A stretch of 64,000 nt of DNA from Tubulanus polymorphus (GCF_964204645.1 NC_134036.1:9031859-9095858); one strand, 5' to 3'. Counted from the stretch's first letter, positions 27,118-63,144 are shown. Numbers and translations: made by a program. The notes: generated from the sequence alone by a model not told the origin.

Positions 27118-28493
<1,376 letters not shown>

Positions 28494-29278: not shown

Positions 29279-32200
29279 TTACGTATTGACTTTTAACGTA
29301 CCCGAGTTTATGCCTATATCGAACTTTATTCTTCCATACGGATCAATCGATGACACTTGCTCCGTTCTTTTCTCAAGTAAACGCTTCGCATCACAATTGA
29401 TTCGAACGTGCCAGAAGTGAATAATGAGTCGCAGCACGAACACGTGTTTTGCAGCACCCATCACGTCGAGAAAAAAATTTTCTTTTTTATCACAGAATTA
29501 ATCTGTTCTTGCGATTCGCTATTTAGCCAACCACGTAACTGGCGCACATGGTTCATCCGTCTCAAAATATCTTTATCGACGCTGGTGTCAGTTTCGTGAA
29601 AACGATTGAAATTACGTAGGTATCCGTTGTACGAGTGATTGGATGGCCACCTGTATTATTTACATAATCATGGTTGACAACTGTTCATATTTCAAGTGTC
29701 TTAAATAGGGTATATCAATGTCTAGTTTCTTTGTTTTTGGCCGCTGTGATATTTTCCTCGGTTGGTTCTAACAGACGGCCTTCGTTAGGATGAAACATAT
29801 TCGAAGTGCGTTGATTGCCGTGTTTTGCTACTATCCCAGCCAAGTCACTTATTACAACAGTCGGCTGGTGCTTCATGGAAAGTATCATGTGTACGTGATC
29901 CCTCGGCCCTTCTCCACGAAGTAACACCTTAATACCGTAGGCCACTCGATGTGGACATGTTACTGCAAGCCAACCACCTGACAATAAAAATAAAGTCATA
30001 TTATTCGAACGAACTTTATATTTAAGTTCGGAGAAACAACGAACATTGATCCTTACCTGATGCTCCCCATAGTTTAACTAACTTGTCACAGTACTATTGT
30101 TACCATAGACCTTGCTTTAAAGCATTTTAAGCATACTCGTTTTCGATCCGGTCTCTTTTATTCCGATGCTTCTGCATGCTTTCTGAATGTCTTGTACTGT
30201 AATAATAGCGCTTATTCCATCTTGCCATTGTAGGTAAGAATTATTTAGTCATAATCTAGGTCTGTTAACTCCTAACCACAGTGTCGTACATCAAATGTAA
30301 TATCTGTTCGGTGGTTATCGTCAATTCATTGTCTTCATCATTGTTGTCGTCTTGGACATGCAAACAGTTGTATTTTTTGTACTCTGTATTTACAGCGGTA
30401 TCACTGCGCTTCTACTTTTACGATCCATGGCGCCCAGTTACTAAAGTTTGGGGCTACTATCTTGTTCGCCATGCAACCTAAAATATGTACAAACGATTGC
30501 TGTAGCCACTATTTGAGATGAATGTGGCTACCTTCTAATGTTGAAAATGCTACCTTTGCTTGATTGATTGATTATATCAGTTTCCACTTGCGATTAAAAC
30601 GAATCAATATTTACATCATCCGTGCAGTCGTCTGTTGGCTCTAATTCTGAAGCTGCAGTAGAAAATAACGCGAATGAATGACGTCCGTTGGTAGAAACAA
30701 ACATATTTGTCTGATCTGCTAAAACTTGATTTATGCCTCACCATTGAGCCTGTTGGTTGAGTTTTATGTTCGATGTTTCCTCTATGATTGACACCAAACG
30801 ACCTACTGCTGTATGATTCTGAAATTATAAGACATGAAATTTCATGAACAATAGAATTAACAAAGTCATATTTGAACTTTACAGTGAGGTTGATACTTAC
30901 TATCAAACCAGCTCGTAACCACAGACATAAACGAGTCGACAACAACAAACTGTCGTCGAAGATATGAATTCCCTCATCGTGCTCCTGATATCGAAACCAA
31001 TGACCTCATTGACGACATTGCCGAACGTATACTTCAATATCTTAAAAAAACAGTGTCATTGAACATTATATGATTAGATAAGACAACATTTTAAATGCAT
31101 GATTTTCGACTCAATTAAATAAATCCATTAAATAATTCAATCAAAATAACTTATGTGAATGGCAATAATATCGACAATTTCCCCGCGAAACGTAAATCTG
31201 TGTTCGTGCAGTTCACATCCACATTTATGGCAACGATTTTTGCGAAGTCTAATCTGCGTGATTTGGCTTGGGGATTGTACATGTCCCGGGATAACCGGGA
31301 TTCGCTTGTAATTGCGTAAATAATGTGACAATTTGTCCAAAAGTTGACCCTGTGGCGGGTATGAATTGTCGATGGAATGGTCAGCGTCTTGGTGTCCAGA
31401 TTATTGGATTTCACGTCGGTGAATGCCAGATTTGATTGCAATGAAAACCACTTTGCAATAGACTTGTGGATACAGCCTTTCCTGATGAGCATTTACAATT
31501 TAATTGTAATGCTTTCCGATCGAACGAAATGACACATCTACCATGCCGACTCCATGATCGTATTTCTTCGCAAAATATTGACATATGGATAAAGCGTTCA
31601 CTTCTCATCCATACACTGATCAATGGAGCCTTTTTTGCAATGCCAACTGTGAACGCACTGGACAAGCATTTTTGCTATCTATTCCAATAATTTATCTATG
31701 TACAAGTGACTCTAAACTGTCGTTTTTTAACTGTGTATTTACATATGGAAGGGCGTGAGTACCACTTTTGACGTGTGGACTCTGGTATGCATTATTGCCA
31801 CCTCGTGCAGACGCTTCTGATGCCGAGATGCACGTGTCGTTTTCGCAACTGAACATTGCAGGCGGCGATGCCCTTGCAATCACATGGATGGGGTATCCCG
31901 CTCCGTGCATAGAATTCGCGATCAAAAATATTCCCCGATTGGGGTCGACACATATCCCGGGGTTGTGTCTGTTGGAATCAATAATTGCAGGTGAATGCTG
32001 TGCCATATGCTTCTTTATATTTTTTCTATACCTAATGGTAGCATTGCAATGTGTAAATTTCACATTGTCCCATTTAGGGTTCGGCATTTCATTGACGGAT
32101 ACGACTGTTCTAAGCGCGGATTCGGTACTTCGTTGGATACGACTGCTGCAGAGCGTGGGTTCGGCATTTCATTGATGGATACGACTGTTTCTAAGCGCGG

Positions 32201-32701
32201 ATTCGGTACTTCGTTGGATACGACTGCTGCAGAGCGTGGGTTCGGCATTTCATTGATGGATACGACTGTTTCTAAGCGCGGATTCGGTACTTCGTTGGAT
32301 ACGACTGCTGCAGAGCGCGGATTCGGTACTTCGTAGACGGATACGACGTCTGCAGAGCGCGGATTCGGTACTTCGTTGACGGATACGACTGCTGAAGAGC
32401 GCGGATTCGGTACTTCGTCGACGGATACGACTGCTGCAGAGCGCGGATTCGGTACTTCGTTGACGGATACGACTGTTTTATTACATACGACTAGATGTGT
32501 TTCGATATTTTCTCTCCGCGATATGATGGCCAAACACTCGGAGCAATGAAAATGGTCATGTCCACTTTGGTTTCGGCAACAAACATGATGGCATGCGAGT
32601 ATAAGTATATCTAGCAAAAGCAAAAAAAAACAGAAAAAGAATAAAAAGCAATAATAATACATCGCTTTCATCGTTGGTAGCCTTATATTCAAGAAATGCA
32701 T
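29279..32701 (-). pseudogene. KDZ/Zisupton-type (HMGXB3-like) transposase gene, multi-exon, degenerate
   Basis: N-terminal Cys/His fingers, SWIM-like CKC...CIH, CxxC, and a SAP-like VQDIQKACRSIGIKETGSKTSML. Catalytic region GASGGWLAVTCPH..YGIK.LLRGEGPRDH...HQPTVVISDLA, then RFHE...LR...LNSESQEQINS. Frameshifts present. Confidence 0.8.
32076..32476 (-). repeat. Coding minisatellite, 39/42-bp units (NEVPNPRSAAVVS-like), about 10 copies
   Basis: Repeats of GGATTCGGTACTTCGTT(GAC)GGATACGACTGCTGCAGAGCGC, with an alternating two-unit higher-order pattern in the left half. Confidence 0.9.
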
Positions 32702-33039: not shown

Positions 33040-34428
33040 AAATCACGCTGTCTTCTACATGGCGTTACAGGCCCCAAATGTTCTGCAGTCGCTATGGCGT
33101 GAAAGGACCCGAACGGTTTTCCGTACAAACAAATGAATAATTGTCACTCGTTATCGTAACTATTCAAAGATCTATCATTCTACATGGATTGTCAATCATT
33201 TAGACTTAGAAAAAAGGCAAATATTGTTTCAAAAAGCTCCTAAAATCACGCTGTCTTCTAGATGGCGTGTCAGGCCCCAAACGGTCTACAGAATAGCTTC
33301 AATTGAGACATGGCGTGAGAGGACCCGAACGTTTTCCGTACAAACAAATGAATAATTGTCACTAATTATCATGAATATTCAAAGATGTATCATTCTATAT
33401 GGTTTGTCAATCATTTAGACTTAGAAAAAGGCAAATATTGTTTCAAGAAGCTCCTAAAACCACGCTGTCGTCTACATGGCGTGTCAGGCCCCAAACGTTC
33501 TGCAGCCAATATGGCGTGTCAAGCTTCAGTTGAAACATGGCGTGAGAGGAACCGATCGGTTTTCCGTACAAACGAAGGAATAATTGTCACTAATTATCAT
33601 AAATATTCAAATATTTATCATTCTATATGGTTTGTCAATATTTAGACTTAGAAAAAAGGCAAATATTGTTTCAAGAAGCTCCTAAAAACCACGCTGTCGT
33701 CTACATGGCGTGTCAGGCCCCAAACGTTCTGCAGCCAATATGGCGTGTCAAGCTTCAATTGAAACATGGCGTGAGAAGACCTGGATTATTTTTCGTTCAA
33801 TCAGTAGTACAATAATCATTATGTCTTAGAAATAGGTTTATAAATCGTTGTTTCTATTTTGTTCATATTTAAAAATATACAAAAATTGCTTTGGTAATAA
33901 GTAAAGAATAAATAGAAATTCATTACACATTGATATACCGGTACTTGAAATTATCTCATTCAGGTTTTACACGTCGTATCTGACTAAATAACGTGGTCCG
34001 TTCGACGCGAACATATATCTTCGTTCCGCGTGAATCATATATAGTCTGCATTTTGCTCGGGGCTTGTGACGCCCTTTACGGATGAAACTCCATGGCTGAA
34101 ATACCCAATTCCTTTTCAGATCCAAGCTTCAGGGTCGAACTACACCCATAAAACTAATGACGACACCAGACGTATAATATTACAACGTACGTACATTTAT
34201 TAAAGTTATGTGGCTGGGACTGACTGTGGTCAGTAAACATATATTGTTATAGGTACAGTTTATAGGGGTATGTCAAGTATAAACACTGAATGATTCACAC
34301 TGAACAGACTGACTCAGTACACCATATAAACACTATACATACAATAACTATACAATAACTGGGTAACACAACTGGGTGACACGCCTTGTCAGATATGGCG
34401 TGACAAGCCCCAGGGCCTGTGACGCCAT
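33040..34428. repeat. Subterminal repeat region of the KDZ-like element
   Basis: About four 204-230 bp tandem units (starts ~33043, 33247, 33460, 33690) carrying ATGGCGTGTCAGGCCCC. The same motif recurs in both orientations at 34059-34073, 34397-34411 and ~34413-34428. Confidence 0.7.
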
Positions 34429-38318: not shown

Positions 38319-40154
38319 ATGTCTCTTGGAGATATCGAATATAAGTACAAATTGAATTTAGTTACACGTAGTTTCAGTACATCTGCTGATGTTGTACTTA
38401 GCTTACAAATGGACTATGGTCTAATCAAAGAATTTCTAAACTTCAAGCAAAAAATATAAGATGCTAGCTATGTTTTATTATTGAATGTAGCCCTTCCAAA
38501 CTTTGTTCAGTTGCACCATACTGAACGTCTGAATCAAAGAATCAAAGAAATCTGTTCCTCTGTAAAAAACAAGTACCAGAACTTGTCCGGTAGAAGGTAC
38601 ATGGAACTGAATGCTAAAGTGTGGTCAATGGGCATATATGCCCATGAACTAGTTGATGTTGGGGGGCAAGTTCAGAATTGTAAAATTTTGACCTCTGAAA
38701 ACTGTGACCTACACAGAAGGATTGATCTACTTTTGAAATCAATCATTGAATATCAAAACAGTACCCACTCCTTGTCTACCAAATGTCAGGAACAGCAAAT
38801 AGAAATTGAAAGATTGAGCTCATCATTAAGTAATTATCTAGACAAGGTTTATAACAATCCTATCAAGACAAATAGTGGGAAATTATTTCATGATCTTAGT
38901 GATTGGCAACAAAAGCGTAGACTTCATTCGCTACATGGGGAAATTGAAAGGGCTCTATGGTTTATGGAAACATATGGCTTGGAAATTGACTCCTTGACTG
39001 TAACTATTGGAACTAACGAGCATAATATCAATTTCAAATCTGACAACAGCAGGAACATAGGTAGTTATGAGAAATTGTCAGACTCCGTGAAGGACAAATT
39101 GAAAAATATTTTGTATGTGCTAGACTCATTTTGTATCAGCGATGCTGCCTACCATGAATTGACCGTTCTTGATTCAGAATTACCAAAGAAGTCACTTATA
39201 GTTCAATGTAGGGAATCTCTGTCAGATATATATTCCATACATAGGGCTGTTGGGGGAATACCAGGAGCCTACATAAGTTTCCATGAGCAAGTAGCTCTTC
39301 TGGTTAAGAATGACCCTTCTCTTCAGTCTGCTGAGAAAATTGTCATAAAATTGCGTGGTGATGGAGCAAACATGAGTCGTGTTAGTAGTTTCCTAACTAT
39401 GTCACTTGCCATTCTGAAAGAAGGGGCAAACACAGGTGTACCTATTCCTATTGCAATTCTTAACCAGTCTGAATCGTATGATTCTATCAAGAATGGTCTC
39501 AAGCCACTCATTGAAGAAATCAATGAAATATTGATTCAAAAGAAAATGGCTATTAATGGTCTATCATATGAGGTTGAAATTGTATTAGGTGGCGATATGA
39601 AATTTTTACAACTGTTGTGTGGTTTAAAAGGCAGTACAGCCAATCAAAGTTGTCCATGGTGCAAAGTGCACAAAGACAACAGACATGAGTGTAATCATAA
39701 TTGGGATCATTTTCATCAAGATCCTCTTGTCAGAACCTATGATAATTTAGTGAATGATGCCCTTGAATCCAAAAACGGGGTAGACCATCTACATATATTA
39801 AAGATAGATCCAGGAAACATTGTTATTGATGAGCTTCATCTATTACTAAGAATATTTGATGTATTATTGCGTAATATCATCACTGATGTTAAGGATCTTG
39901 ATGACTTTGCCAGACTTGGCCAGCTAGATACTGCTAATCAACCACTAATAGGAGATAAACTACAAAATCTTTGTAAACTGATAAACTCATGTGGTGTGAC
40001 TTTCAGGATATGGGAAGTCAGAGATCCATTAACACATAAAGGTACTGGCAAACTTGATTGGACATCTGTTCAAGGACCCGATGTAAAAACCATTATGACA
40101 CTTCTACCTCAGATGTTACAGGGGTCAGATGTCATGCATGCACAGACAAAACAT
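38319..40154 (+). pseudogene. RAG1/Transib-related DDE transposase, 5' part (interrupted by the Chapaev-type insertion)
   Basis: Motifs IKLRGDG, GGDMKFL..CGL....CPWC and IDELHLLLRI. In-frame ATG at 38319 with a premature TAA at ~38457. Confidence 0.85.
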
Positions 40155-41340
40155 CACGACCGTACGCGAACACGCGAAAACGAGTAACGCTCGGCGACCC
40201 GCAACAATTGTATTGATTGGCGGGATTCGACCTCTCGCTAAAAATAGCTGAGCCGCTATCACGTGATCGAGCTAATGGTTAAAGGATAGCACGGAGGTTG
40301 TGGACGGGTTTCCTTATTGCTGGTTCAATGATGACGTATATCATCCCCTCGTGCCTTGGAAATAAACTTAGTTCCCATCTCAACTTCGTCAAGTTTTTAC
40401 TTTTTCGCTGAGTGATCTAGTTTTCGCGCTATACAGGCGCAAAAACTTGGGATATTCTGGATTTTTCCACGCATGCGGAAGCCGCTGGTAATAAACTAAT
40501 TTCTTCTCAGTGATCAAATATACAAAATAAAACGAAACATCTCGAAGAAGAAAATTTTCCCACGTTTAATTTGATATACGATACGTCTATATTACGATAA
40601 ATGTTGACTGACCACTTTTGCAATCCGCGTCCGGGATTTTCTACAAAAAGATGCCACTCGGATTAGGCCTCAGCCCACATGCTAAAAAGCGATGTTATCG
40701 TTTCAGAATATCCGGATAGTTATTATTTGAACTATCATATGACATGAAATTTGAGTCCATTAGGCCTAATAATGTAAATTTCAATACCAAAACAAAGTAG
40801 GTCCTGATGTGGATCGAGTAGGCCTAATACGCCCTTAGGTCTACCCCCGGCCCGGTACCAAATTAGCTGTTTAAATACTAATTATCATAGGCCTTCCTAA
40901 TCCAGCAGGCCGTAGGGTGGGTGGAATTAGGGGGGGGGGGGGGGGGGTGGTTGCTGATTTCATTTTAGTGGAACTTTTAACAAATGGGGGGGGGGTCTAG
41001 AAAACCCGCATACTGGTACTAGGAAGATCAGACTGCATTTAAAAATCAGATAAAATTCTCAGTTTGCAGTACATCAAATTCTTAGGTTGTTTTTTATACT
41101 GATGTTTAATTATATTCTAGATCGGAACGCACAGTGGTCCAGGTATCCCAAGTTGTTTTGATCGGCGACGTGAGCTGCTGAACCAGTGTAGGCCTATAAA
41201 ATCTTACGGGTAATGTAAGTGTAAGTTAAACCTTTATCTCTAAACCAAATAATTGAAATTATTTACTTTGCTTTATAACGGCTGATGATACTTCCAGGAA
41301 CGGAAATCAGCAGTATTGATCTAAATTATCTATGTTCACG

Positions 41341-44300
41341 ATGGCGGATAAAAATGTAAACAGGAGTCTCGAGTCAAAGGGTGTGAGAGGAAAAAGAAAA
41401 CTTTATTTTGGAGGGAATAAAAAGGGAAAGAAAAACAAAATCAAAAAGATGATAGAATCAAGTAAGTATTCTATGATCCTATTTTCATATGAATTTACTG
41501 TTAATGTTAGTGTTCTTATTTCAATTAAGTGTTATCAATAAAAGCTCTAATGTATTATTACGTGATTCTTTTTTCCATTTTCATCAGTTTTAAAATCAAT
41601 CGTGTATAGTTAACTCATATTTAAGTCTTCCTTTGATTATCTCCAACCAAAAAGTATACTCTCTCAAAAATAAATTGTGAAGTTCTTTAATAAAATAAAC
41701 AGGCCCGATAATCAAAGGAAGACTTAAATACATGTAAGACTGTAAATTCCAAAAAGCATTTTTCCAATGACGTTACAATGGATTTTCCCATGACGTGACT
41801 ATTGCGGACTGCCGAGAGGATTTTTTTGTGTTAGACCGAGTTCCAGTTCTGTGATTTTCTCAGAATATTGCCACCTTGTGTTGATAAACCACCAACAATT
41901 GAAGTCACACTGGAGGGTAAGTTTTATAGTAGTAAATTATATAATTTATTCTCTCACCGACATGAAATGAAGTCATTCATTATATTAAAACAATTTTGCC
42001 AACATATCAAGTATCAGTTTGTGTCATCAATAAATATATTAATGGCAATACATTTCGTGAAGTTCAAAAGTTCTGAAAAGTTAATTTGTTACACTAACAA
42101 TGGTTGTTTCATGTACTAATAAAAATCTAAACAGTGAAACTCTCTTAAGTCAGGATGATCATGATGTAATCCAGATGAAGACTTACTAAATTTTAGTCCT
42201 ATAGAAATTGGGACTAAAATATAGATAACATTTGTTATGTGACATATATGATGATGACTGAAGCGAGTTTAACTGTATATTAAAGATTAAATGATCACTT
42301 ATTTTGTGTAAATTCAAAGCTGGATTCACACTACCACTAGTTCGACCGGTTTAGTTTGGATTGGATCAAATCACTGAGTGTGCGTTCACATACGCGTTGC
42401 TAAATTGGTTCCAGATTGTAATGACTTGCAGTTTTATATTTGAACAATTGTGATGATTGCAGTTTATTATATTATATAATATACTGCAATCATCAAAATT
42501 GTTCAATTCAATAGTTTTAAACTCATCACGCTTTGGTCCAGTCCAAGTTGGACCGGGCCAAATTTAGACCAGTCTAAATAACTTTGTGTGATCACGCTTT
42601 AATGAACTTCAATACATTGCTTTATTAATATGCGAGATGCAAAATGCACTTTATTTCATTTCTTAATACTTGCAAGTAGCAATACCTTTTTTATTTAAAT
42701 GTTTTATTTATGTTTTCATTTTGATTTGATTAAGGAAACATGAAAGCAACTAACATGAACAGTAGTGAAGATCTCCAAAATTCTGCCGCCCACTCGTACT
42801 CGAATACATCATCAGATGCAGAAAGTTTATCATCATTTTCATCAGATTCATCACATATTCTACCTCTGGCAACATCAAGTCCTATCCATCCCACTGTTCC
42901 ATTGAATTCATTTAAAACACCCCTTCAATTTACCCCATTAGTTCAGAAAGTTCATCAGGAATCTCAAACAGACGTAGAAGAAGGAAAAGTTAATCTACAC
43001 ATATCCCTATTACAGAAAGAACTAAAACAAAGAGATGGTCAGCTAGTTAAAATGGAATTAGAAATTGAACAGTTGAACAATACAATCGTTCAATTGAACC
43101 AACAATTGATGGAAAAAAACAACATATTACTCGAAAAAGACAAGAAAATCAAAATTGTTCAGGCCGAAAACAAAAGTCTTAATAGCATAAAGTCGCACAT
43201 GGATTCTGTTTTTGGCGCAACCAATATTGTTCAGCTTCCTGATAGCTATACCATCAATGATCCAATCTTTAAAGGTCGACTTATATCATCCGCGCACACA
43301 TCCACTTTCACTAAATTAGACGAACCAATTGTACCATCACTTTCAGCCAGTCAACAAACAGTAGAGAAGAGGGCAGCAAAATTGAAAACCATTTTAGATT
43401 ATACATCAGCGAAAAAACCTACAATAGAAAATAGTTCATTTACTTTAGCTAAATTTCTGAATCAATATCAAAATCTCGCTAACAATGCATTGAAAATTGC
43501 TCGATTCAATGCTGTTTCAAAAACCCTCACACCAGAAGAAGCGGTCGAACTAAAATTAAGATTACGCTTGACGATGACTCGTTTGCTTCAGTTAATACAG
43601 GTTCTAAGATACTACAAAATTAATATATTTCCTGCAATAGCCAAAATTAGAGCCGAGATTGAGATGCGTGGCAGGAAATTGGCTCCTTACATATCGGTCG
43701 GAGAGAAACCACTAGAGGTGAATAGTCGCACCCACGAGATAAAAATTTCCCCATATGCAACAATATCCAATGTTAAACATCAGCTTGAAAGGACTGTGTC
43801 ACGGTTAATAAGATCTGGCAAATTGATTGATTCAGAAGCATTTCACGGGGAAATCTGGGTTAAGATTGGAATTGACAAAGGGGGTGGGAGTACAAAGATG
43901 ATTTATTCTATCGTTAACAGCAGGGTGGGTAATAATCCCGACGAAGCTGAAATGTTAGGATATTTCGAAGGAACTGACTCTACCGTAAATATGGAGAGCA
44001 TATTTGGGTATTTCAGACATGAAATGTCCGCAACAAATTACATCGATGTAGAGATTGAAAATGAAGAAAAGAAAGTAATAGTTCGATTTTTCATTATCGG
44101 CGACTATCATTTTCTATGTCAGTGCCTAGGTCACCAAGGATCTACTGCTACGTATCCTTGTGTGTGGTGCCTTGTCAAACTAGAGGACATCAGGAAAAAG
44201 AATAGTTTGCCACATAACTTGGAATCCTGCAAGTTCACAGAGAGAACAATTGCACAGTACAAAGACAATCTAGGCAGGCTGAATGAAATTCAGCCTGGAC

Positions 44301-45541
44301 CAGAAACTGAAAATGTATGCGCACCAATGCTTATAATGCCTGATGACTTGGATCATGTTGTCCCCCCTCCACTACATATATCCCTAGGCCTCGGTCTTTT
44401 CTTTTTCAACATGTTGGAAGACAAATGTAAAGACATAGATAGAGTTTCGCTAGGAGATCGAGATCCTGATCTCAACGCCGAATGGCAGGATCTCTCAAAA
44501 AATCTTTCAAGATTAACCGCTGAATTAGAGTCATTGAAATTAGAAATCAACAGTAGTAATGATGTATTAGACATGTTAAAGACTGCCAAGAAGAAAAAAA
44601 GAACACCAATTAGCTGCACGGCACCTATATGTATTATTCGAACCATTGAACAGGCAAAGCCTCATCAGTATACTTACTGTAAAGAATGTGAGGCTCCATA
44701 TCACAGTCAGTGTATCGATAATGTAGATAATTTCATTTGTGTCGAATGTGTCACTGGTAAGAAACCATCAGCAGATTCTATAATCAAACAAAGTGTGAAA
44801 TACATCAATGATTTAAAAACTCTACAAAATAGCACAAAATCACAAATAGGTGAAGCCCAAACTCTACTCAACAAAGTATTCGAAAGAGTCAACGCTAAGA
44901 TGGGTCCACTGCAGAAACGCCTGAATGAAATACTTAAAGAAATAGGAATCGATAAACAGGCATATCATTCGAATTCCTTTGTAGGAAATCATATCCACAA
45001 ATTACTGTATATAGATCAAAGGTCGGGTGTAAACAACCCTCAGAAATTATGCAAAGTTCTTGCCGGGCACCCAGAGGAGGAACATAAATTCTATTCTCTG
45101 TTTGAGAAATTCCATCATTTATACAGCTTATATACAGCCAACCGGATGCTTACCCCTCAGGAAATTGATCAGTTAGATTATCTTTGCAATACATTTGGAT
45201 CATGGTTCCCTAAAACCTTCCCCCAAACTAATATCACACCCAAGCTCCATATACTTCTGTTTCATGTACCTAGATTTGTTAGATTATGGGGCTCTCTAGG
45301 CCTGTTTAGCGAACAGGGCCTAGAGTGCAAACATGCAAGTGTAAACAGAGATGCACGGATTTATTGCACAATACGAAACAACATCTTCAGAACCAAACTA
45401 CTATTCATCAATCAAGGATTGTATACAACTAAAACCCTGAAGATCGATGCTATAAAAAGAAAATGTCAATGCGGAGGTTTCTATAAAAAAACCAATGAAG
45501 GTAGAGTTTGTAAAATCTGCAAGAAAAATGCAAAATTATAG
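41341..45541 (+). CDS. Chapaev-type DDE transposase A, intact (exons 41341-41461 and 42735-45541), with an inserted PHD finger
   Basis: Motifs KIGIDKGG, IGDY..C..GHQG....YPCVWC, PPPLHISLG, YHSNSFVGNH, ITPKLH and SEQGLE..H. C4HC3 finger at 44615-44749. The phase-1 splice is in frame. Confidence 0.9.
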
Positions 45542-45654
45542 ATTTACCAAAATACAACAATTAAAAACCAATTTTCATACAGTAAATGAAAATGGTATAT
45601 GAATTGAAATCCTTGATTAGTATATAGATAGTAGTTATGAAACCGTGAATACGC

Positions 45655-46260
45655 AATTAAGCAACTTGAATATCAATAGTCAGTGTAGAGGTGGAAGCGA
45701 AATGGGCCAGCATTCCTTCTGTTTAAATCTCTCCCGCCCGCTACACTGGCCAGGGGATAATTTCAGTTGCTTATTTTGGAATATTGGTTTAAGGCAGGTG
45801 TGCATCAAACACTCACCGTTAAGAAAATCCTGTAAAGATAATTCCACATTGACTGATTAAAAACTTGTATTGTAGTAAATCTGTAAATATAGTAAAATCA
45901 AAATGTTATTATCTATGAATTTCACCTTAAATCCAAATTAAGCAACTTGAATATCAATAGTCAGTGTAGAGGTGGAAGCGAAATGGGCCAGCATTCCTTC
46001 TGTTTAAATCTCTCCCGCCCGCTACACTGGCCAGGGGATAATTTCAGTTGCTTATTTTGGAATATTGGTTTAAGGCAGGTGTGCATCAAACACTCACCGT
46101 TATGAAAATCCTGTACAGATAATTCCAAATTGAATGATTAAAAACTTCTATTGTAGTAAATCTGTAAATATAGTAAAATCAAATTATCTTTGAATTACAC
46201 TATCAATTCCAAGTAATTTGAATATCAATAGTCAGTGTAGTCAGCATCGCTACACTGACC
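45655..46260 (+). ncRNA. Tandem hairpin array 3' of transposase A (2 full units, 281-bp period, plus a collapsed third); candidate pre-miRNA-like RNA
   Basis: GTCAGTGTAGAGGTGGAAGCGAAATGGGCCAG pairs with CTGTTTAAATCTCTCCCGCCCGCTACACTGGC (45679-45750, and again from 45960). Basal stem TAAGCAACTTGAA / TTCAGTTGCTTA. Function as an RNA is inference. Confidence 0.55.
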
Positions 46261-47183
46261 CAAGTCAGGTATCAAAAATTGAACGCAACGTTTTGGTAAA
46301 GTCGCTATTGGTTTTCAATGAGAAAATAATTCAAAACGTGACTGTTATTGGCTTAAATTGTTTCATGAAACCAGACCCAGGGGCTTATTTTAGAATATTG
46401 AAGGCAGGTGATGGGAAATGTACATCCAAATTAACTGAATAAATACTTCTAATTGTAAATACATTAAAATCATATCTGTAAATACGATGAATCAAAGTTC
46501 TAATAGCCTACATTGAGACTATAATGTTTTCTTAAAATAACTAAAAAGCTGTAGGCCTATCTTGTATCAAACTTACATATTTGATTATATGCTTACAAAC
46601 AGCGAATTAAACATTTTACGTTAAATTTATGACAATGCGTTCGGCTTACCTTCCTTTTTGTGATCATAAAACTGCAATGACCAGATAATTTGCATTACTC
46701 TTTCCAGGCTGAAAGACAAAAATTTGAAATTTTCAGTTGACTTTTTGATCCAGACAGCGTAGCATGAAATAACAAAAATGGTATCGTGCTAACCTTAATA
46801 ATATGCTCTTCCATAGTCCATCATGTACGCTATATCACACTAGGCCCATGTGGTGTTTGAGTCAAGTCGTTTGGGCAGCAAAAATTAGGCAGATAAAACT
46901 TCCAATAGATAACATTCACACGGACCTTATCGCTGTAAAAAGTAGCCTATCCTACGGCACGCACCCCCGCCTCTCACCCTTAAAGTGCACTGCTGAACTG
47001 ACCTTTTTGTGCGAACCAAGACAATGCACAATGAAAAATCCTTTATCTGATTCAATTTGTGAGTTAAAAAGCCCTGAACGTGGCTACGTAGGTCTGATTT
47101 TAAAAAATATCCCAAGGGAGGCTCCATTTAAATTCCCCAGGCCGGAAAGCATATAACCGCTGCTTCGGGTATGTCTCAGCTAC

Positions 47184-47731
47184 CTAATGTCTATTTATTA
47201 ATGGATGAGACCTGTTTTTCTGGGATATTTTGCTTACTTTTTGGGGTACATACCTCATTTATGTCTTAACAGAATGCCAAAAATTGCGGACAACAACTGA
47301 ATATCCGATATATTTCCAGTTCTGTACCAATTAGATGGATTGGCAAAAAGACTCCTTAAGTCCAATTGAATGAGAGAGAAAATCCTCCATTTTGTGAAAT
47401 TTCTTGAATTTTTACATTGTCACCATGCCTACGAAATGAAGTTATTTTTCTTGTGGGGTCTCAACAACTAAATCAGGGTGGCGTAGGCATGGTAACAATG
47501 TTCAAATCCAAGAAATTTGACAAAATGGAGGATTTTCTCTCTCATTCAACTGGACTTAAGGAGTCTTTTTGCCAATCCATCTAATTGGTACAGAACTGGA
47601 AATATATCGGATATTCAGTTGTTGTCCGCGATTTTTGGCATTCTGTTAAGACATAAATGAGGTATGTACCCCAAAAAGTGAGCAAAATATCCCAGAAAAA
47701 CAGGTCTCATCAATTAATAAATAGACATTAG
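47184..47731. repeat. Long near-perfect palindrome/foldback (250-bp arms, 48-bp spacer), probable MITE
   Basis: 47184-47433 is the reverse complement of 47482-47731 with only scattered mismatches. Confidence 0.92.
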
Positions 47732-48482
47732 TCGATACATGAGGATGGCTTGGCTGAGGCCTTTTAATTGTTTGATAAGGACTAGGCCTACTAATCTTAT
47801 GTAGACTAGGCCTACGGACCCATTTCCCCCCATCGATTATCATCATGGTGAGTTAAGTAGCCTACCTGGCATTTAGCTTCGTGTAAATATTGCATCACCT
47901 TTACTCATGTCTCAATTCGACATCTACTGACTAATTTACCAGGTGTTATGAGTCTAAATCGAGAGTGACTAACTAAGTAACTGAACGCGGAAGTAGAAGT
48001 TTTTGTCGTAATTTTAGATTTCGACCTGCCGGGTACACTACCCCTATCACCCCAGGCCCAGCTAAATACATCTATTGCAATCCTCATAGCGTTTAATTCT
48101 AATTTATGAAATTTTGATAACAAAAAAACAAATCAGTAAACGGTTTCTGCCTTCAAATACACGACGAATTTCACATCGGCAAAACAAAACAACCGTCCGC
48201 CATTTTGTTAAAATAATCCGCTGTCACATGACTACGAGTATCAGAATATATATATTAATATGTTATTTCAATGGATCATACAAGTTATTCTTAATATTAG
48301 AGGGATAATGGATATTTAAGATAAATTGCGTTAAAATCAAATTGATTTCGATGAATGTAATATGTGTTCGTATTCAACGTCGGAGACTGCCGAGCTTGGG
48401 TGAGCGTGAAGCCACGAAGCTTAGCTCCGCCCACTATAAGTTCGAGTTCACGCTGCGATAGACCGCTGTACGGTCGTGACAT

Positions 48483-54133: not shown

Positions 54134-55437
54134 CCTAGTAGAGGCTACTAGCCTATCACGACGATACGCGATAAGGCAATAACGACTAACAATGTGAGCG
54201 CGTAGTTAAGCAAGGGCGCGCTATTTTTAACTTTCTGATCGCGTGACTTCATGACGTCACGAGGCATAATGCTAGTGAATAGGAAAATCTACGGTTTTTA
54301 GTGGCATGTTTCTTGCGCTATTTAGCATAATCGTCCCCTGCCAGATTGCAAATAACATTCAACTGGCCTGGCTCCACCGCGCTAAATTTGCCGTTTTTTG
54401 AAATTTCCCCGACGTTGTCGCCTGTCCGGCTCGAAAGTCTAGCGATAATCGGACGACCTATGTGTAAGTATACCACCAAATACATCAGGAAATACTTAAT
54501 CTGAGGATAAGAATAATTATATCTGTAAACATAGCGCTGAGCGTGAGCTTATCTAGTTTTAATTGATATATTATAAGTGGTGTTTTTGTAACCGTATCGC
54601 TGAGAAATCGTGTCGCTCCTAACCCGGAAATAAGTTTTAGTCGATTTCGATCATCATTCAAATTTGCAGTATCTTTATCTTTATAGGCCTTGCCTCATTT
54701 GAACACCGAATTTAGTGATATCCATGAGAGATAATTCATATTGAATCGTATGTTCAATAGTAGAGAGGCCTGATTCATGTCCAAAAGCAAAGCCAAATCA
54801 AATAGTAGTCCCCTTTTAGACTTTCTGTTCGAATATCCACTTTTCTCTTTCAGGATATTTTTCGTCGTTTAAATTCCTACTGTACTCATAAAATAAGATA
54901 TCGTCTCGTGAGGTAGGCTCAAAAATCAGTCATTTTTCAAATCGAAAACTTTTTCTTGGACTTTGAAATAAAAAAATTGATCAATCATGCATGTAACTTC
55001 AATAATTTCAGATTTTTCGTGGTCCTTCAGTGGCAGGCTGCCGTCGGGTGGGGCCCTTCAATATCGTCTAGTTAGGTAGGCCGAAAAATGTATTTCATAC
55101 TAAAAAGTTCTCCTCGGGCTAAAAATTCCTTGATTAAGCTGTACTTTTGTTTATAATTTCAGATTTTTCGCAGTCGCAGTGTCAGTCTATACCAAAAAGT
55201 TAAAAATTCCTTGATTAAGCTGTAGTTTTTTGTTTATAATTTCAGATTCGCAGTGTCAAGAGTCCAACCGCAAGTGTTGATATTGATATCGTTTAGACTG
55301 CAGTCTGGCCATATTTTTAATTTAGTCAGGTGAGGTAAACCAACAATTTAATTTCGTATGCTAAGTTGAAAAACCATCTCATGCTTACAAATAAGCGGTT
55401 ACTTTGTTACTTGAATTGGCATGATTTCAATTTCAGA

Positions 55438-58400
55438 ATGGCAGAAAATTTTGACAGGAAAGTTGGTCAAGGCAAACGTAAGCTTTATTATGGGTCCAAC
55501 CAGAAAAGTAAGAAAAATAAAGCTAAAGTAAAAAAAATGATCGAAGCAAGTACGTATATCAATACAATTCTTTTTATGTCCCAGTAGTTTCATTCTTCAC
55601 TCCCAAAATGCCAACTATGAATCATGCCTATGCCTCGGCTGTGCCCATTGCATTTTGCTGGCAAGTTAGTTATTCATGAATAAGGTATACATTTTCGATT
55701 TTTGATTTGTAAGTATATTTGTTAAAAATATAATCTATAGCTGCATTCAAATGAGAGTGAAAAATAAACTTTGGAATTTGTTATTTAAATTAAGTGTTTA
55801 TTTTCTGATTGAATAAAAACAATAATTATATTTTCTGACTTATTTTCTGACTTTTTAAGTTCTGATTTATTTTTCAAAAAGGAACTGATTTCTAAACATG
55901 CTCTGAATCAAAGTATCTAGGGATCATGAAGATCTTAAATGGCAATTCTCAAATAAATGTGTTTCGTGTATAGTCTACTCCTGTTGTGCCTATTAACCCA
56001 TTCCCCCCTAAGCCAATATCAGTATTGAAACATTAATAAGAGTCTCGTATGTATTCTTGGAAAACAGGCCTCAGGTTTACAATGTATACAATGCACATGT
56101 TCATATTTAAGAATTGTTCAGAAAAAGGAGGTGAAGTAATTATATTATGATGACTGCCAGTGAGTGAGACTGAGAATTTGAGGGTTTATGAGTGACAACA
56201 ACCCGCAATAACAAAAGGGTAAAACTCTCACCACTATTCCATTGGCATTTATCTGGATTGTTGTTAACTACAAACTTAAGAACTCAAATGAACCCTAGCA
56301 AGTGTAAAGACACAATGTTCTACGTATAATGTTATTGTGGGTCTTATATTTGAAATGGAAAGAAATTATGATAAAAATGGTTAGGTAAGTTGAATTATAT
56401 TTACTAACTGGTGACTAATACTTCCTATTTATGAATATATGGATTAATGAGAAAACAACAAAACTAAATTAATTAGTACCATATGTACACTTCCATTGAT
56501 CTTTTATTTCAACTGATAATGATCGACATTGGTTTATAAATGAAGGGACTCGTATGCATGAAAATTAATTCATTGAAATTGATTGTATTTTACCATCTAT
56601 TGATTCAATAGGAAATGCAAAATGGGGAAATACGAGCCTATTGAGTGAAAGTGTGTCTAGCCAGTTTTCTCCTCAATCGCAAACTTCATTTGACGAAAAA
56701 GAATCAAATATTCAGCCTCCATTTACCAGTACTCCATTTACGTCCCCTGTTATGTATGTACCAAGTACCAACGTTGAAACATCTGTACCGACCTATCATT
56801 TCAAAGAGGATCGCAGCTGTCAAACGGAGAACACTGCAACTGAAAATAAACAAGAAATTAAGATCAAACTACTTGAGTCGAAAATGAGACAGATAGAAAG
56901 TGAGAAATTGGTTTTGCAATCAGAAAATGTAAATTTAGCAGAGCAAATCAAAATTAAAGATCAGAAATTAGAAGAGTTACAAAATCAGATATTGCAATAC
57001 GAACAATATGAATCTCTAATCAGAAATAAAAGCTTATTAGAAATATGCGGAGGAAATATGAATAGCATCTTCGATGCTCGTCACTTAACGAAGTCTCGCC
57101 CTGAAAAGTTTTGCAAATTGAGCATCCCTAATGTCCCATCATCAGCGGCAAGTTCCCAAACTCTAGAAGCTCGAGCATTGACAATGAAAAATGTATTAGA
57201 CACAATATCAGCTAAACCAATCAATTCATATCAGAGCAGCATCACGCTTTCAACATTTCTATCACACAATCCCAAATTATCTAAATCTGCAATAGACCAT
57301 TCTCAACAATTACATCTACTCAAACCATTAACCGCATCGCAATCTGTTGAATTAAAACTTGCTCTGCGTCTGCCGATGAGACGACTTTTCGACTTGAAAC
57401 GGGTTCTAAAAAGCTATGGAACGCCAATCTTTCCATCTGCAAACAAAATCCGACAAGAGATCTTGCAGAGGGGAAAATCTTTCACCCCCTATATCACTGT
57501 AGGCCAAACAGAATTAGAAGTTAATTCGAGAACCCATGAAAAAAAGACAGCTCCTCATGCAACTCTGACCAATTTGAAGTTACAAATTCAAAGAACTGTA
57601 CAAAATCTATCTGACCGAAAGAAAATGAGTTTTCATCCAAATTTTCACAATGAAGTTTGGGTCAAAGTGGGTATTGACAAGGGAGGGGGTAGTACAAAAA
57701 TGATATACTCGGTTATAAATGGGGAAGGGAACAACAGTGCAGATGCCAGCGAAATGATTGGCTATTTTGAAGGCACTGATATTGTTGAGAATATGAGAAC
57801 GGTATTCGGGATTTTCAAAGATGAAATCGATGCTAATGATATCACTATATCAACAATGATTGATAATAGAAAATTAGATTTGCCTGTTAGGATGTTCCTC
57901 ATTGGGGATTATGCATATCTGTGTAACTGCATGGGTCACCAGGGGCCCTCGGCTACCTATCCCTGTTTATGGTGCCAAGTAAAACTTGAAGATCTTAGGA
58001 AAAAGAACAGAACACCACACAATCCATCTTCCCATCCATATCAAAACCGTACTATCGCATCATATCTCGAAAATTCATCAAAATCACCACAATCATTCGG
58101 CCCAGAAACCTTGAGTATTTCATCATCAATGCTATTCAAACCATCAGACATGCTTCATCTCGTTCCTCCAGTTCTCCATATTTCCCTAGGATTAGGCCAC
58201 CGTTTCTTTGAGATGATGGAAAACAAGTGCAAAGAACACGACCAGACAAACTTAAGGGAATCGAACCCTGAATTAAACAAAAAAATGGCAAGACCAATCA
58301 GAAGTAGTTTCAAAATTAAGACTAGAAATCGAATCGAAACAATTGTCTTTTGAATCATCCAGCCAATTACTTAATCTCATGAAAATTTCCCACCGTAAAG

Positions 58401-59317
58401 GTTCATCGGTAATTGACTGCACGGCATCCATCTGCTTCATTCGCTCTATTGAAAATGCAAACCCAAATGAATATACATACTGCGTAGATTGCAACTTACC
58501 TTTTCATAAACAATGCGTATCGAATATAGAATGTTTTACTGGTCGCAAACCATCAGCAGATTCTATCATAAAAAAACAAAACATCATCATCACAAAGCTA
58601 AAAAAAGACATCTCAACTTTGAAAACACAAATAGCCCCGGAACAATCTCTTCTGAATGAAATTTTCAAAGAAATTAATAGTATTCAAGGACCGACCCAAA
58701 AAAAACTCAACAATATCCTATCTGAGATTGGTATTGTTCGACAGGCCTACCATTCGAATAGTTTTGTCGGCAATCATATCCATAAAATGTTCAAAATCGA
58801 TGAATCAAAAGGAATCAATAATCCGCGTAAATTATGTGAAGCACTAGAATTTGACCCAGCTACTCAGTCATTATTCCAACTTTTGTTTGAGAAATTTCAC
58901 TCAATCTATACATTATATACGGCAAACCGTTTCCTTGAAAATTCTGAAGTTCAAGAACTAGGTAGGCTTTGTGATGATTTCGGTATGTGGTATCCGAACG
59001 CGTTTCCGGACACAAACATCACTCCGAAAATGCACATGCTAATTTATCATGTACCAGAATTTGTTCGTGTCTGGAGGACAATTGGCATGTTTGGCGAACA
59101 AGGACTGGAATCTAAACATGCTAGTGTCAATAAAGATGGACGAGTTTATTGCACTATAAGGGACAATATTCTACGAACCAAGTTAATCTTCATTAATCAG
59201 GGTCTATATACTACGAAAACGCTAAGTATCGAAACTGTTCCACGCAAATGTCTGTGCGGTGGATTTTTTATAACTAAACAAAATGAACGAAAATGTCAAA
59301 AATGTAGTAAGAGCTAA
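55438..59317 (+). CDS. Chapaev-type transposase B (exons 55438-55549 and 56612-59317); one frameshift in an A7 run at 58279-58285
   Basis: Colinear homologue of transposase A (KVGIDKGG, IGDY, YPCLWC, PPVLHISLG, YHSNSFVGNH, ITPKMH, GEQGLE) with the same phase-1 intron. Deleting one A fuses ORFs 56641-58353 and 58343-59317 (LNKKWQDQSE, compare LNAEWQDLSK in A). Confidence 0.88.
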
Positions 59318-59400
59318 ATTTTCAATCAAGTACCAAACATCTAGGCCTATACTTTGTTATGTGCATTTTCGGAGTGATAGTAATATTTTCACCGTGATGT

Positions 59401-60618
59401 CTGACAGTAGAGAAGTGGATGGGAAATGGGCAACTTTATGGTTTTTAAACCATAGAGTTATGTTCGGGTTTATTCCCTCCCGCTCGCTCTACTGTCAGTC
59501 TATTAACTATTAATGTATTCTGTATATCTATGTCTGTCTATCTATCTGTTTGTCTGACAGTAGAGAAGTGGATGGTAAATGGGCAACTTTATGGTTTTTA
59601 AACCATAAAGTTATGTTCGGGTTTATTCCCTCCCGCTCGCTCTACTGTCAGCCTATTAACTATTAATGTATTCTGTCTATCTATGTCTGTCTATATATCT
59701 GTTTGTCTGACAGTAGAGAAGTGGATGGGAAATGGGCAACTTTATGGTTTTTAAAACATAGAGTTATGTTCGGGTTTATTCCCTCCCGCTCGCTCTACTG
59801 TCAGTCTATTAACTATTAATGTATTCTGTCTATCTATGTCTGTCTGTCTGTCTGTCTATCTATCTGTTTGTCTGACAGTAGAGAAGTGGATGGGAAATGG
59901 GCAACTTTATGGTTTTTAAAACATAGAGTTATGTTCGGGTTTATTCCCTCCCGCTCGCTCCACTGTCAGTCTATTAACTATTAATGTATTCTGTCTATCT
60001 ATGTCTGTCTGTCTGTCTGTCTATCTATCTGTTTGTCTGACAGTAGAGAAGTGGATGGGAAATGGGCAACTTTATGGTTTTTAAACCATACAGTTATGTT
60101 CGGGTTTATTCCCTCCCGCTCGCTCTACTGTCAGTCTATTAACTATTAATGTATTCTGTCTATCTATGTCTGTCTATGTCTGTCTATCTATCTGTTTGTC
60201 TGACAGTAGAGAAGTGGATGGGAAATGGGCAACTTTATGGTTTTTAAACCATAGAGTTATGTTCGGGTTTATTCCCTCCCGCTCGCTCTACTGTCAGTCT
60301 ATTAACTATTAATGTATTCTGTCTATCTATGTCTGTCTGTCTGTCTGTCTATCTATCTGTTTGTCTGACAGTAGAGAAGTGGATGGGAAATGGGCAACTT
60401 TATGGTTTTTAAACCATAGAGTTATGTTCGGGTTTATTCCCTCCCGCTCGCTCTACTGTCAGTCTATTAACTATTAATGTATTCTGTCTATCTATGTCTG
60501 TCTATGTCTGTCTATATATCTGTTTGTCTGACAGTAGAGAAGTGGATGGGAAATGGGCAACTTTATGGTTTTTAGAGTTATGTTCGGGTTTATTCCCTCC
60601 CGCTCGCTCTACTGTCAG
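59401..60618 (+). ncRNA. Tandem hairpin array 3' of transposase B (8 units, 153-165 bp); candidate pre-miRNA-like RNA
   Basis: Units start at 59401, 59554, 59707, 59872, 60037, 60200, 60365 and 60528. Each is a ~98-nt hairpin CTGACAGTAGAG...CTCTACTGTCAG, separated by (TCTA/TCTG)n linkers of variable length. The repeat itself is certain; function as an RNA is inference. Confidence 0.6.
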
Positions 60619-63144
60619 CCGTAGCCTATAGTCCTATACGAATAAAGTAAACAATTAAGATATAATCTGCTTACCAGTTATTACTTCGTACATGGGGCAG
60701 GGAGGTTAAAAAATCAGAATTTCGTGCTTACGTCTGTTCGTAGGCCTATGAGATATTGACTTACCGAGATATAACTGTGGCCACAGCCACATTATCAGCC
60801 AAATCATCTTTCCTGTTGGTGAATTCCATCCTTTTCTTAAAACATGAAATTCTGGTCCACTTATTTTCGACTGGAAAGTCTTTACGGCATAGCCAATCTG
60901 AGTTCAGTCCTGGTACAGTCTGCAATAGACCTATATTCGGATAAAAATTCATGTCACATATTCTGCCGAAACAGCTTCGGTGCATTAGGCCTTTTCATTT
61001 CAAAGTATCAGCATGAACTTTTTAGTATTGTGGAGCTGCGGTGACCTACGGCTACTACACCAGGTCCAGTCCTCCAGGACAGGAGGTCTTTCGAGTATCA
61101 TTTTACTATTGAATGTCGAATTATCTGCCATTATACAAAGAGAATCTACCATACCTATTTATCATTTTGCGTAAAGAAATGGTTCAGGTGGTTTTGGTAA
61201 GCTACAAAGTCAACTAAAAGCCTACACACGTATCAGCAGTACTTACTGTCAGCTGGTCAGTCGACTCGAGAACCCGGAAATAGAACAGAAATATTGCATT
61301 TCAGAGGCAAATACAGCATCTATCGTACGCATTTACACCAATTAAGCCATCGTTATCTTCCTTCATCTGTTGCCAATATCAAATATGATATCGTATGCAC
61401 ATAATCCAGTGTTATCCTGTGAAATCTTTGAATTTGACGTCAAAAATTATTGAAAACATCGCCGACGGCGGCCATTTTAGGAAAATCACCACCAGGAGGA
61501 CCACTGCGTATTTTTATAATGAAATATGATTTTATCAATCTAAAAACCACAAAAACATATTTCCTGAATGAATATCTGTTAAAGATTTAGAACAATGATT
61601 GAAAATTCATATTATGACACACAGCGCAGCGCAAAAATATAATCAGCAAGTTCACGCACGGTAACTAAGGACGCGCACGTACGCCACTGTCAAGGGTCAA
61701 GGTCAAATTCAGCTGAAAGCTTGTACACTCGTGCTATGTAGGCCTATGTATATGCGTAGGCCTAACATCCGGACAGATTGGTCGTACGCCTATTGAATAA
61801 CAACCCTCCTAAATATCCTGAATTTTGTTTTGAAGTTCAATCCAATGAGTCCGTTAATTAACGCAACAATTATACTGTGCTTGTTTGAGACAGTAAAGGT
61901 CAGTTCCGGTAGGCCTAAGCCTTAAGGTCGCTTAAAACTCGATAAAACCTTCAAGCGACACAGCGAACGATCTCCTTTCCTCCACAGCGAACGCTTACTC
62001 CGAATGTCAAGTGTGAGTCCAGCATACGACTAGGAGTGTGTTATATACTTGTATTTAGTAAATACCTTGTGCATTTGACAATGATCGGTATGTATCGGTT
62101 AATTCGGTAAAGAAAAATAGGTATTGTTGAAGTAACTCCTTGAAACCCGCAGCCAAATCACTGGTAGTAATACATTAATTTGTACTCGATTTTATTCTCA
62201 TGATGAGGAGAAACTCGCAGCTGATCCCCGGAACGACGATGTAGTAACACACGTCGATTCGTCGATGTTTACGGCTCGACAGTGCTTTTAAAATCTAAAT
62301 TAGTAAATTTCCAGTGTATCGGTAATATGATTTGATGAGGAAAATAGGCTATTGTTAAAATCACTGTTTGAAGACCGCGGCAATAAATTAGTTCATTTAT
62401 ACTTGAATTGATAATCGAAGTGACAATCGGCCTGCAGGTTGATTTCGGGATGACGACTCGAAAAAACATGTCGCCCCATTGAATGAGGCTAAATTTTCGA
62501 TGTTTACGGCCCGACAGTGCTTTTGTAACGATGATTCGTGAAAAAACACGCGGAGTATTTGTAGATCTCAGTGAGCTGAACGATATCATACGGATTGTAT
62601 CGACAACAGCGGCAAGGTAACAAAGCCTTAGTTCTTTTAGTGAAAATAGTGTGACATAAAATAATAATAATAAGAAACACGCGAATCTCAATAGGGTTTT
62701 CTCTGATGTAACAGAAAACCCTAATTAATTCTTCGATCCCAAATTATTCTAAATGTTACTTTTTAGCCCACTTCAGACTTTTGTCCCAGCCGGCTATTGC
62801 GTTCACTTTTTGTTTGTCCGTCCGTAGACGGAATTCAGTTATTTTGGGAAGTTTTGAAGAGTTACGAGCCGCGACAGCCGTTTTTCAGCACTATACGATT
62901 CTAGGTAAACAATCGCTGATAGGTGAAAGCTAAAACAAGTTTACGTGTGGATTTATAGTTAATCCTCACTGAACAAACTGATGAAGATCAAGTGATTATT
63001 AACGATATTACAGATCGAAACGTCGCACGGAGAGCATGTGTGACAGACAGATTTTACTCTTTATATCTTGTCTAAAAAGATATTGCTTGAAATAGATAGG
63101 ATATGGATAATTAGAGAAGAAATTGGCGAAAACGTTGTGCAGAA

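Follow-up and report, generated by a model that had tools for sequence, protein, structure and literature searches.

Tandem repeats within DNA transposons are usually treated as junk and as possible seeds of satellites. Hairpin RNAs with which such repeats may be compared include the microRNA (miRNA) hairpins derived from palindromic miniature transposable elements with inverted repeats (MITEs; Made1/miR-548 in primates), which arise from the two terminal inverted repeats (TIRs) of a non-autonomous element; the polycistronic miRNA clusters of host genes, with several hairpins on one transcript; and the constitutive transport element (CTE) of Mason-Pfizer monkey virus (MPMV) and the RNA transport element (RTE) of intracisternal A particles (IAP), long, imperfectly paired hairpins of unspliced mobile-element mRNAs that stand past the last stop codon and before the poly(A) signal, the activity of CTE rising upon multimerisation. 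Closest in architecture are satellite arrays captured inside CACTA transposons (CMC superfamily), as in the Jozin element of Chenopodium; in CMC/CACTA elements, subterminal repeats in direct and inverted orientation also lie close together and are required in cis (PMC8978399). Transposon-linked tandem repeats are also on record in Drosophila virilis (Tetris, PMC4079207) and in the clam Donax trunculus (DTC84, PMC3879986). Here we analyse a 64,000-nt stretch of the Tubulanus polymorphus genome (GCF_964204645.1, NC_134036.1:9031859-9095858; the window, numbered from its first nucleotide), in which two divergent Chapaev-type transposons, elements A and B, each carry a tandem array of the same hairpin behind the transposase gene. 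Judged from sequence, one group of Chapaev (CMC superfamily) DNA transposons has in the hairpin repeat a module that is both conserved and portable; we describe its anatomy, conservation pattern, genomic distribution and exchange between lineages, and infer from these its transcription, its action as RNA, and its processing or a binding partner. No description of such a module for Chapaev/CMC elements, nor the core strings of the hairpin, was found in the literature searched.

Like the arrays of Jozin and other CACTA elements, the module is built of 150-300-bp monomers repeated in tandem close to the 3' part of an autonomous CMC-superfamily element, with variable copy number and related monomers also present as a free array (PMC8978399). 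It differs from them in that the monomer is a long imperfect hairpin standing directly behind the stop codon in sense orientation, in that it recurs in transposase lineages just 47-56% identical, and in showing arm-specific conservation and pair-keeping changes, none being reported for the plant cases. With Tetris and DTC84 it shares short arrays carried by DNA transposons and able to seed satellites, but those arrays lie in non-autonomous or foldback elements or their TIRs, whereas here a structured unit sits in the presumed 3' untranslated region (3' UTR) of an intact transposase gene (PMC4079207, PMC3879986). What separates the module from the usual junk is a long hairpin that keeps its place and orientation behind the stop at ~50% protein identity, arms and pairing that are kept while the surroundings are lost, and a recent passage between two lineages.

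Both arrays lie on the sense strand, about 84-140 nt beyond the transposase stop, and comprise the following features:

59398-60618, plus strand: array B, eight hairpin units (Tandem Repeats Finder, TRF: period 165, 7.6 copies, 95% matches)
59401-59498, 59554-59651, 59707-59804, 59872-59969, 60037-60134, 60200-60297, 60365-60462 and 60528-60618, plus strand: the eight stems of array B
45655-46260, plus strand: array A, period 281 (TRF, sequence reading, folding and model matches)
45679-45750 and 45960-46031, plus strand: the full hairpins of array A, with an outer stem that extends to 45655-45780 and 45936-46061
46231-46259, plus strand: truncated third hairpin of array A (sequence reading)

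The first stem of array B (59401) begins 83 nt past the stop codon of transposase B (59315-59317). Its units score 98-123 bits with a covariance model of the hairpin and are separated by TGTC/TCTA-rich linkers of 55-67 nt, and the eighth hairpin has a 7-nt deletion in the apical part. For array A, TRF delimits 45655-46183 (period 281, 1.9 copies, 97% matches); a 429-bp stretch (46145-46573) that includes the truncated third hairpin is missing from the second copy of element A, and hence this hairpin is polymorphic between copies. The preliminary description of the window, made from the sequence alone, had reported eight hairpin units shortly after the stop codon in B and two full units plus a remnant in A; TRF and sequence reading recovered the former, the latter count also stands, with the remnant being the truncated hairpin listed above, and the arm sequences that it quoted for A and B were exact on re-reading. 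The arrays are internal, as the element continues for a further 1.1 kb (B) or 2.2 kb (A) before the 3' TIR. The idea that the hairpin is a junction left by excision, or the TIR pair of the element itself, was rejected for this reason and because the TIRs (CACGAC...) are unrelated to the arms.

On the plus strand, the B unit folds at about -49.1 to -50.2 kcal/mol (z -7.6) into a 39-bp stem (12 + 5 + 5 + 6 + 11 bp) closed by a 4-nt loop, and on the minus strand at -42.7 kcal/mol (z -7.9). The A hairpin has a core stem of ~20 bp, a loop of ~20 nt and an outer stem of 17 bp: the core alone (81 nt) gives z -2.1 on the plus and -2.6 on the minus strand, and the hairpin with its outer stem (126 nt) gives -42.4 kcal/mol with z -3.8 on the plus strand and z -5.4 on the minus strand. 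Units of type C, from a further transposase lineage of the same genome, fold at -53.3 kcal/mol (plus) versus -48.3 (minus). The plus strand thus folds better in B and in C, with the two strands equal in A, and forms five G.U pairs as against three on the minus strand. The stems at first folded by eye therefore hold up under calculation (z -7.6 for B, -2.1 or -3.8 for A), but A and B do not share one geometry, since the conserved core lies at the base of the hairpin in B and, in A, beside the ~20-nt loop and above a further ~27 bp of stem.

The likeness between A and B was assessed with a covariance model for which only units of B and C were used, run unfiltered on both strands over window positions 1-59000. 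Its two best matches were the two hairpins of A, at 36.2 bits (E 2e-6) on the plus strand versus 8.7 bits on the minus strand, a likeness that exceeds chance. A near-perfect 111-nt palindrome at 10660-10770 (-61.9 kcal/mol, z -11.7), unrelated to the cassette, reached 25 bits on both strands, which is the level attained by structure alone. The non-coding DNA of A and B otherwise gave no blastn match (word size 7) outside the transposase open reading frame (ORF), and the regions beyond the arrays of A, B and C gave none with blastn or tblastx, and thus hold no shared second gene or conserved DNA. It had been claimed that the non-coding DNA surrounding the hairpins of A and B is not visibly alignable and that the hairpin is the only conserved non-coding piece, and both claims are upheld by these searches.

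Within the hairpin, A and B are identical at 16/19 positions of the 5' core and 15/20 of the 3' core, at 7/12 (5' side) and 7/10 (3' side) in the lower stem, and at 5/13, with 22 gaps, in the apical part. In 69 units of B and C, the arms have a pairwise diversity of 0-0.5%, as against 2% for the apical part and 17-23% for the linkers, this last figure being inflated by microsatellite indels. In the lower helix, taking the structure of B, four pairs differ on both sides in A with pairing kept, a number reached in 0 of 500 shuffles, and structures slid by 1-3 columns give 0-1 such changes; the comparison is between two independent lineages, A and B/C. A U19.G85 wobble is present throughout A, B and C. 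Arms conserved above loops and linkers, and a basal stem that keeps pairing despite sequence change, are therefore both properties of the repeat, as first proposed.

A first model of the hairpin was run on the whole 268-Mb genome (77 contigs), and the coordinates of its matches were compared with those of transposase matches. It gave 149 matches, which correspond to ~120 distinct sense-strand units at ~28 loci, the remainder being opposite-strand echoes. Nearly every array lies 50-150 nt past the point where a same-strand transposase gene ends, and those linked to a transposase (lineages A, B, C, D and F) are always in sense and 50-150 nt after the stop; ~24 of the ~28 loci share this position. 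Arrays have 1-27 units with periods of 153-354 bp, and fall into six types:

Type A: 2 loci, 2 units, period 281 bp
Type B: 7 loci, 3-14 units, period 153-165 bp
Type C: 5 loci, 3-13 units, period 161 bp, 844-aa transposase
Type D: 4 loci, 1-3 units, period up to 354 bp, ~83% identical to B
Type E: 1 locus (C12:11097280-11102985), 27 units, period 215 bp, no transposase match nearby by coordinates
Type F: 5 loci, 1-7 units, period 160 bp, ~74-80% identical to B

A 17-nt string of the 5' core is exact in all 11 F units listed (ten in two C12 arrays and one solo on C10), and a 15-nt string of the 3' core is exact in D and inexact in F and E. With 0-1 mismatch, the 5' core has 153 matches genome-wide versus 5 for a reversed-pattern control, and these fall in arrays or in a handful of solo places. 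Solo units lie at C4:18460708, C7:14753806, C3:20463832 and C5:12140787-12141047, and diverged units of types D to F, apart from the E array listed above, include those at C12:11170065-11170875, C6:14804821-14805299, C12:10533770-10534020, C12:10576695-10577746 and C12:11237929-11238348. Counting A and B, the module is thus shared by five or more transposase lineages, in every case in sense and just past the stop, and its arrays have been amplified to different periods, as had been suggested from A and B.

In six other subfamilies (the 964-aa and 865-aa families and four groups of loci), the 1.5 kb past the stop contains no hairpin of this kind. In one hairpin-less subfamily, a solitary hairpin with an 11-bp perfect stem at C10:8626185-8630189, ~290-345 nt past the stop, looked related by eye, but neither the model nor local alignment against shuffles supported its kinship with the cassette. 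The locus of the amphioxus homologue of the transposase has no array and no model match. In metagenomes, 119 contigs contain the 17-mer once each, as chance allows, and no hairpin was found in the 79 scanned of the 80 matches listed.

The transposases of the subfamilies are roughly equidistant (43-56% amino-acid identity), and their relationships are not those of the arrays. B and C arrays are 92% identical (hairpin 96/98, first 40 nt of the linker 35/40), but the C-terminal regions of their transposases only 49%; the genes beside the two arrays share a single 98-bp block at 78%, and the flanks nothing. A tree built on the C-terminal 330 residues places C (100/99 support) with the 964-aa family, which lacks the hairpin, and apart from A and B, so that the presence of the hairpin requires at least two changes on the tree. 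Since near-identical arrays accompany such dissimilar transposases in different clades, the cassette has, on this evidence, been recently transferred or converted between the B and C lineages. It occupies the same place and orientation in both, although the flanks are unrelated.

The position of the array relative to the transposase gene would also suit a place in the 3' UTR. Between the stop codon of transposase B and position 60641 there is no AATAAA or ATTAAA, and the first hexamer follows directly upon the array:

60641-60646, plus strand: first AATAAA beyond the transposase B stop, 22 nt past the last hairpin

In subfamily C, an AATAAA stands 16 nt past the last hairpin, in DNA that is otherwise unalignable, the chance of finding one within 30 nt being ~3% per element. 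The array lies on the sense strand between the stop codon and this first polyadenylation hexamer, and hence is most likely part of the 3' UTR of a single-exon transposase mRNA. The apical loop contains a TTTTT run, which would stop RNA polymerase III, so a read-through transcript of RNA polymerase II is the likely context for its transcription.

We propose that the repeat is a selected RNA element of the 3' UTR, acting either as a cis-acting expression element or as a non-canonical RNase III substrate, and give this proposal a little less than even credence. A selected module is preferred to a passive satellite because arms, pairing, place and orientation have all been kept across transfer, and RNA is mildly favoured over DNA because the plus strand folds better, has more G.U pairs and conserves the U.G wobble, and because a poly(A) signal stands just behind the array. 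Each unit (~100 nt) folds into an imperfect stem of ~40 bp, the constrained part being a central imperfect duplex with GUGGAWGSGAAAUGGGC on the 5' side opposite UCYCUCCCGCYCGCU on the 3' side, in which a U.G pair, and an unpaired A facing an unpaired CG, are retained in all units. A protein may recognise this duplex sequence-specifically in the RNA, the lower stem beneath it being free in sequence as long as it pairs, with apical parts and linkers left to drift. Tandem multiplication by unequal exchange would then set the dose, whether the module is a cis element or an RNase III substrate; the arrays are exchanged or converted between co-resident subfamilies. Our first choice, doubtful as it is, would be that the module acts in cis and promotes or gates how the transposase mRNA is exported, stabilised, formed at its 3' end or translated; a role as RNase III-type substrate, with small RNAs as the product, comes second and seems unlikely. 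At the level of function only, the former may be compared with CTE and RTE, with which the module shares imperfect hairpins between stop codon and poly(A) signal and conserved internal loops on a variable helical scaffold, but it has no sequence or Rfam similarity to them and no two-fold symmetric pair of loops, and its carrier is a DNA transposon. More broadly, and with somewhat less than an even chance of being right, a DNA transposon family may have its own dosage-tunable structured-RNA cassette in the 3' UTR, swapped among distant co-resident subfamilies, which would serve as an export or stability element for a transposase mRNA that has no introns, or would supply small RNAs encoded by the element. 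If the module does act as RNA, this would be a rare instance of a cut-and-paste transposon encoding a module that acts in cis or produces small RNAs, in effect an accessory 'gene' made of RNA, and the 0-14 natural copies would offer an experimental handle on how transposons tune their own expression.

Several observations weigh against this proposal. The minus strand also folds with a strong z-score, because the repeat is a near-palindrome, and the strands are equal in A; only two independent lineages enter the covariation comparison, and 2-3 pairs of the middle stem are broken in A. An ATTAAA is found 20 nt past the stop in A and in every C linker, and could end the mRNA before or inside the array. 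The four sequencing runs that contain the element, one of them with 83-kb contigs, look like DNA, with even coverage across the whole element including the part beyond the AATAAA, and one possible RNA run (2015) contains none of it. Copies 98-99% identical carry 3-14 units, as those of any satellite would. Absence from other family members and occurrence elsewhere as an independently mobile MITE had been named in the preliminary description as observations that would speak against a selected cassette, and each is seen in part: several equally successful sister subfamilies do without a hairpin within 1.5 kb of the stop, and hence the hairpin is dispensable, and near the 27-unit E array (5.7 kb) and a few solo units no transposase can be detected.

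Among other explanations, an array of palindromic or cruciform-forming DNA sites for the transposase or a host factor, like the subterminal repeats of CACTA elements or internal transposition enhancers, is improbable but fares best. CMC/CACTA elements are known for subterminal repeats required in cis (PMC8978399), the near-palindromic unit folds on both strands, its conserved cores could serve as half-sites, and dosage through tandem repetition suits arrays of sites. The arrays, however, lie 1.1-2.2 kb from the 3' end with no counterpart close to the 5' end or the TIRs; searching the elements with the model brings up no other copy, and arms and TIRs are unrelated. The would-be half-sites differ by fixed transitions that produce G.U pairs on the sense strand, and lower-stem pairing is kept amid sequence change, which a DNA-binding protein that reads sequence would not need. 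Sister subfamilies with similar transposases and ends, moreover, manage without the array.

It is likewise improbable, and marginally more so, that the array is a neutral or selfish internal satellite, an inverted-repeat monomer captured once near the ancestral 3' end and spread by unequal exchange and gene conversion, with concerted evolution giving the appearance of conservation. In CACTA elements, arrays close to the 3' end are documented whose monomers have relatives in free arrays (PMC8978399), and Tetris (PMC4079207) and DTC84 (PMC3879986) provide related cases. As in captured satellite DNA, the monomers are internal and head-to-tail, near-identical copies differ in having 3-14 units, and a free array of 5.7 kb exists; unit number (1-27) and period (153-354 bp) vary widely, several subfamilies lack the module, and the 92% identity of B and C arrays reveals recent exchange. 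Drift would nevertheless leave unexplained why only the stem strands align between A and B when loops, linkers and flanks are lost, why four double changes keep pairing, why diversity in the arms is 10- to 50-fold below that in linkers (a figure inflated by microsatellite indels in the latter), and why place and orientation are fixed after transfer into unrelated flanks. Conservation is thus arm-specific and accompanied by pair-keeping changes, and so differs from the evolution without site-specific constraint of captured satellite DNA. Were the array neutral all the same, it would show cleanly how a transposon gives birth to a hairpin satellite and spreads it.

A narrower case of action at the RNA level is that of a polycistronic cluster resembling miRNA precursors (pre-miRNAs), in which Drosha and Dicer would cut one ~22-nt duplex per unit to act in trans, in self-regulation or anti-host silencing; we consider it rather unlikely. 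The repeat is a stable imperfect hairpin with strong fold z-scores and arms more conserved than loops and linkers, has, at least in B, a structure-constrained lower stem of ~12 bp below a sequence-constrained segment of ~20 bp, and recalls miRNA clusters in its tandem repetition; the host is a bilaterian, in which Drosha and Dicer are expected. Resemblance to miRNA clusters and to MITE-derived miRNAs further extends to the transposon origin of the hairpins and to their number per presumed transcript, but the module, known here from DNA, is internal to an autonomous element and its geometry is off that of canonical processing. With a 39-bp stem and 4-nt loop in B against a ~20-bp core stem, ~20-nt loop and 17-bp outer stem in A, no single ruler, from the basal or the apical junction, frees the conserved duplex in both, and the ~35-bp stem with flexible loop and duplex at a fixed distance of canonical primary and precursor miRNAs is not found. 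With the conserved duplex at different heights in A and B, and with so tiny a loop in B, a canonical pre-miRNA is a poor fit. A CNNC motif was not seen by eye at the expected distance in B, and Rfam gave nothing at gathering thresholds (best sub-threshold matches 13-20 bits, E > 0.6), hence no described miRNA family. Nor was any site with five or fewer mismatches to four putative 22-mers found outside the arrays in the window and six related loci, and thus small RNAs that target the element itself or competitors find no support there. The preliminary description accordingly stands as regards a conserved, structured and amplified module, and finds no support as regards the 'pre-miRNA-like' geometry, given that the conserved core is at the base in B and at the top in A and that the B loop has 4 nt.

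A nested MITE or foldback element that inserted behind the transposase gene and was amplified in place, which the perfect 10-12-bp inverted repeats at the stem ends, a real MITE elsewhere in element A (described below) and the few solo units might suggest, is very improbable, as hairpins and arrays alike lack flanking direct duplications in A, B and C, ~24 of ~28 loci are tied to the same position behind the transposase, and the arms are unrelated to the TIRs of their carriers.

The carriers and their transposase genes were delimited as follows:

40155-48478, plus strand: element A, complete Chapaev-type transposon (pattern search, sequence reading, homology with its second copy)
42740-45541, plus strand: transposase A, a single 933-aa ORF with DUF1280 (PF06918; Pfam E 1.7e-21)
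54157-61733, plus strand: element B, complete Chapaev-type transposon (homology with four other copies stops at these points)
56641-59317, plus strand: transposase B (ORFs 56641-58353 and 58343-59317; Pfam DUF1280)

Chapaev elements are marked by target-site duplications (TSDs) of 3-4 bp and by TIRs with invariable 5'-CAC...GTG-3' termini (PMC4079192). Element A has 11-bp TIRs, CACGACCGTAC, at 40155-40165 and 48468-48478 (the opposite end reads GTACGGTCGTG) and a TSD, ACAT, at 40151-40154 and 48479-48482; homology with its second copy on the same contig (C12:95897xx) stops at 48481. Element B begins with 5'-CACGACGATAC..., ends with ...CACTCGTG-3' and is flanked by the TSD CTAT (54153-54156 and 61734-61737), and contigs of a DNA run break at 61733/61734, i.e. 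at its 3' end. Both elements are therefore of the Chapaev type, having 4-bp TSDs and CAC...GTG ends, and the initial assignment of the carriers proved correct.

Transposases A and B are 42-55% identical, and Pfam finds only DUF1280 in them (E 1e-21 to 3e-22); among named relatives, the nearest is an amphioxus protein that has DUF1280 and faintly matches RAG1_imp_bd. The window copy of transposase B, compared with the majority copy, has a 1-bp insertion near 58279 that splits the ORF and lacks 18 bp at 58524; the intact ORF in other copies encodes 921-923 aa. On contig C8 (6785196-6796946), five tandem copies of a distant transposase homologue (32-35% identity), each with in-frame stops, are spaced by ~2.18 kb, and tandem amplification seems here to have involved the transposase gene itself.

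Upstream of element A, a 568-aa ORF without Pfam match (38481-40187) runs 32 bp into the 5' TIR, and hence the site at which element A inserted seems to have been another coding element. Within element A, positions 47187-47728 hold a 542-bp foldback or MITE-like insertion with 250-nt arms that are 96% complementary and a TA duplication, and the second genomic copy of the element lacks this insertion and shows the empty site. Outside the 3' end of element B (61734-61790) is a very high-copy repeat (word depth ~7800 versus ~230 for the element in the DNA run), whose motif TAGGCCTA is frequent within the window. The window also contains four further tandem arrays, at 7902-8700, 11121-11498, 32077-32475 and 33094-33781 (periods of 171, 202, 81/42 and 228 bp, respectively), and a perfect (GCT)84 microsatellite at 27413-27665.

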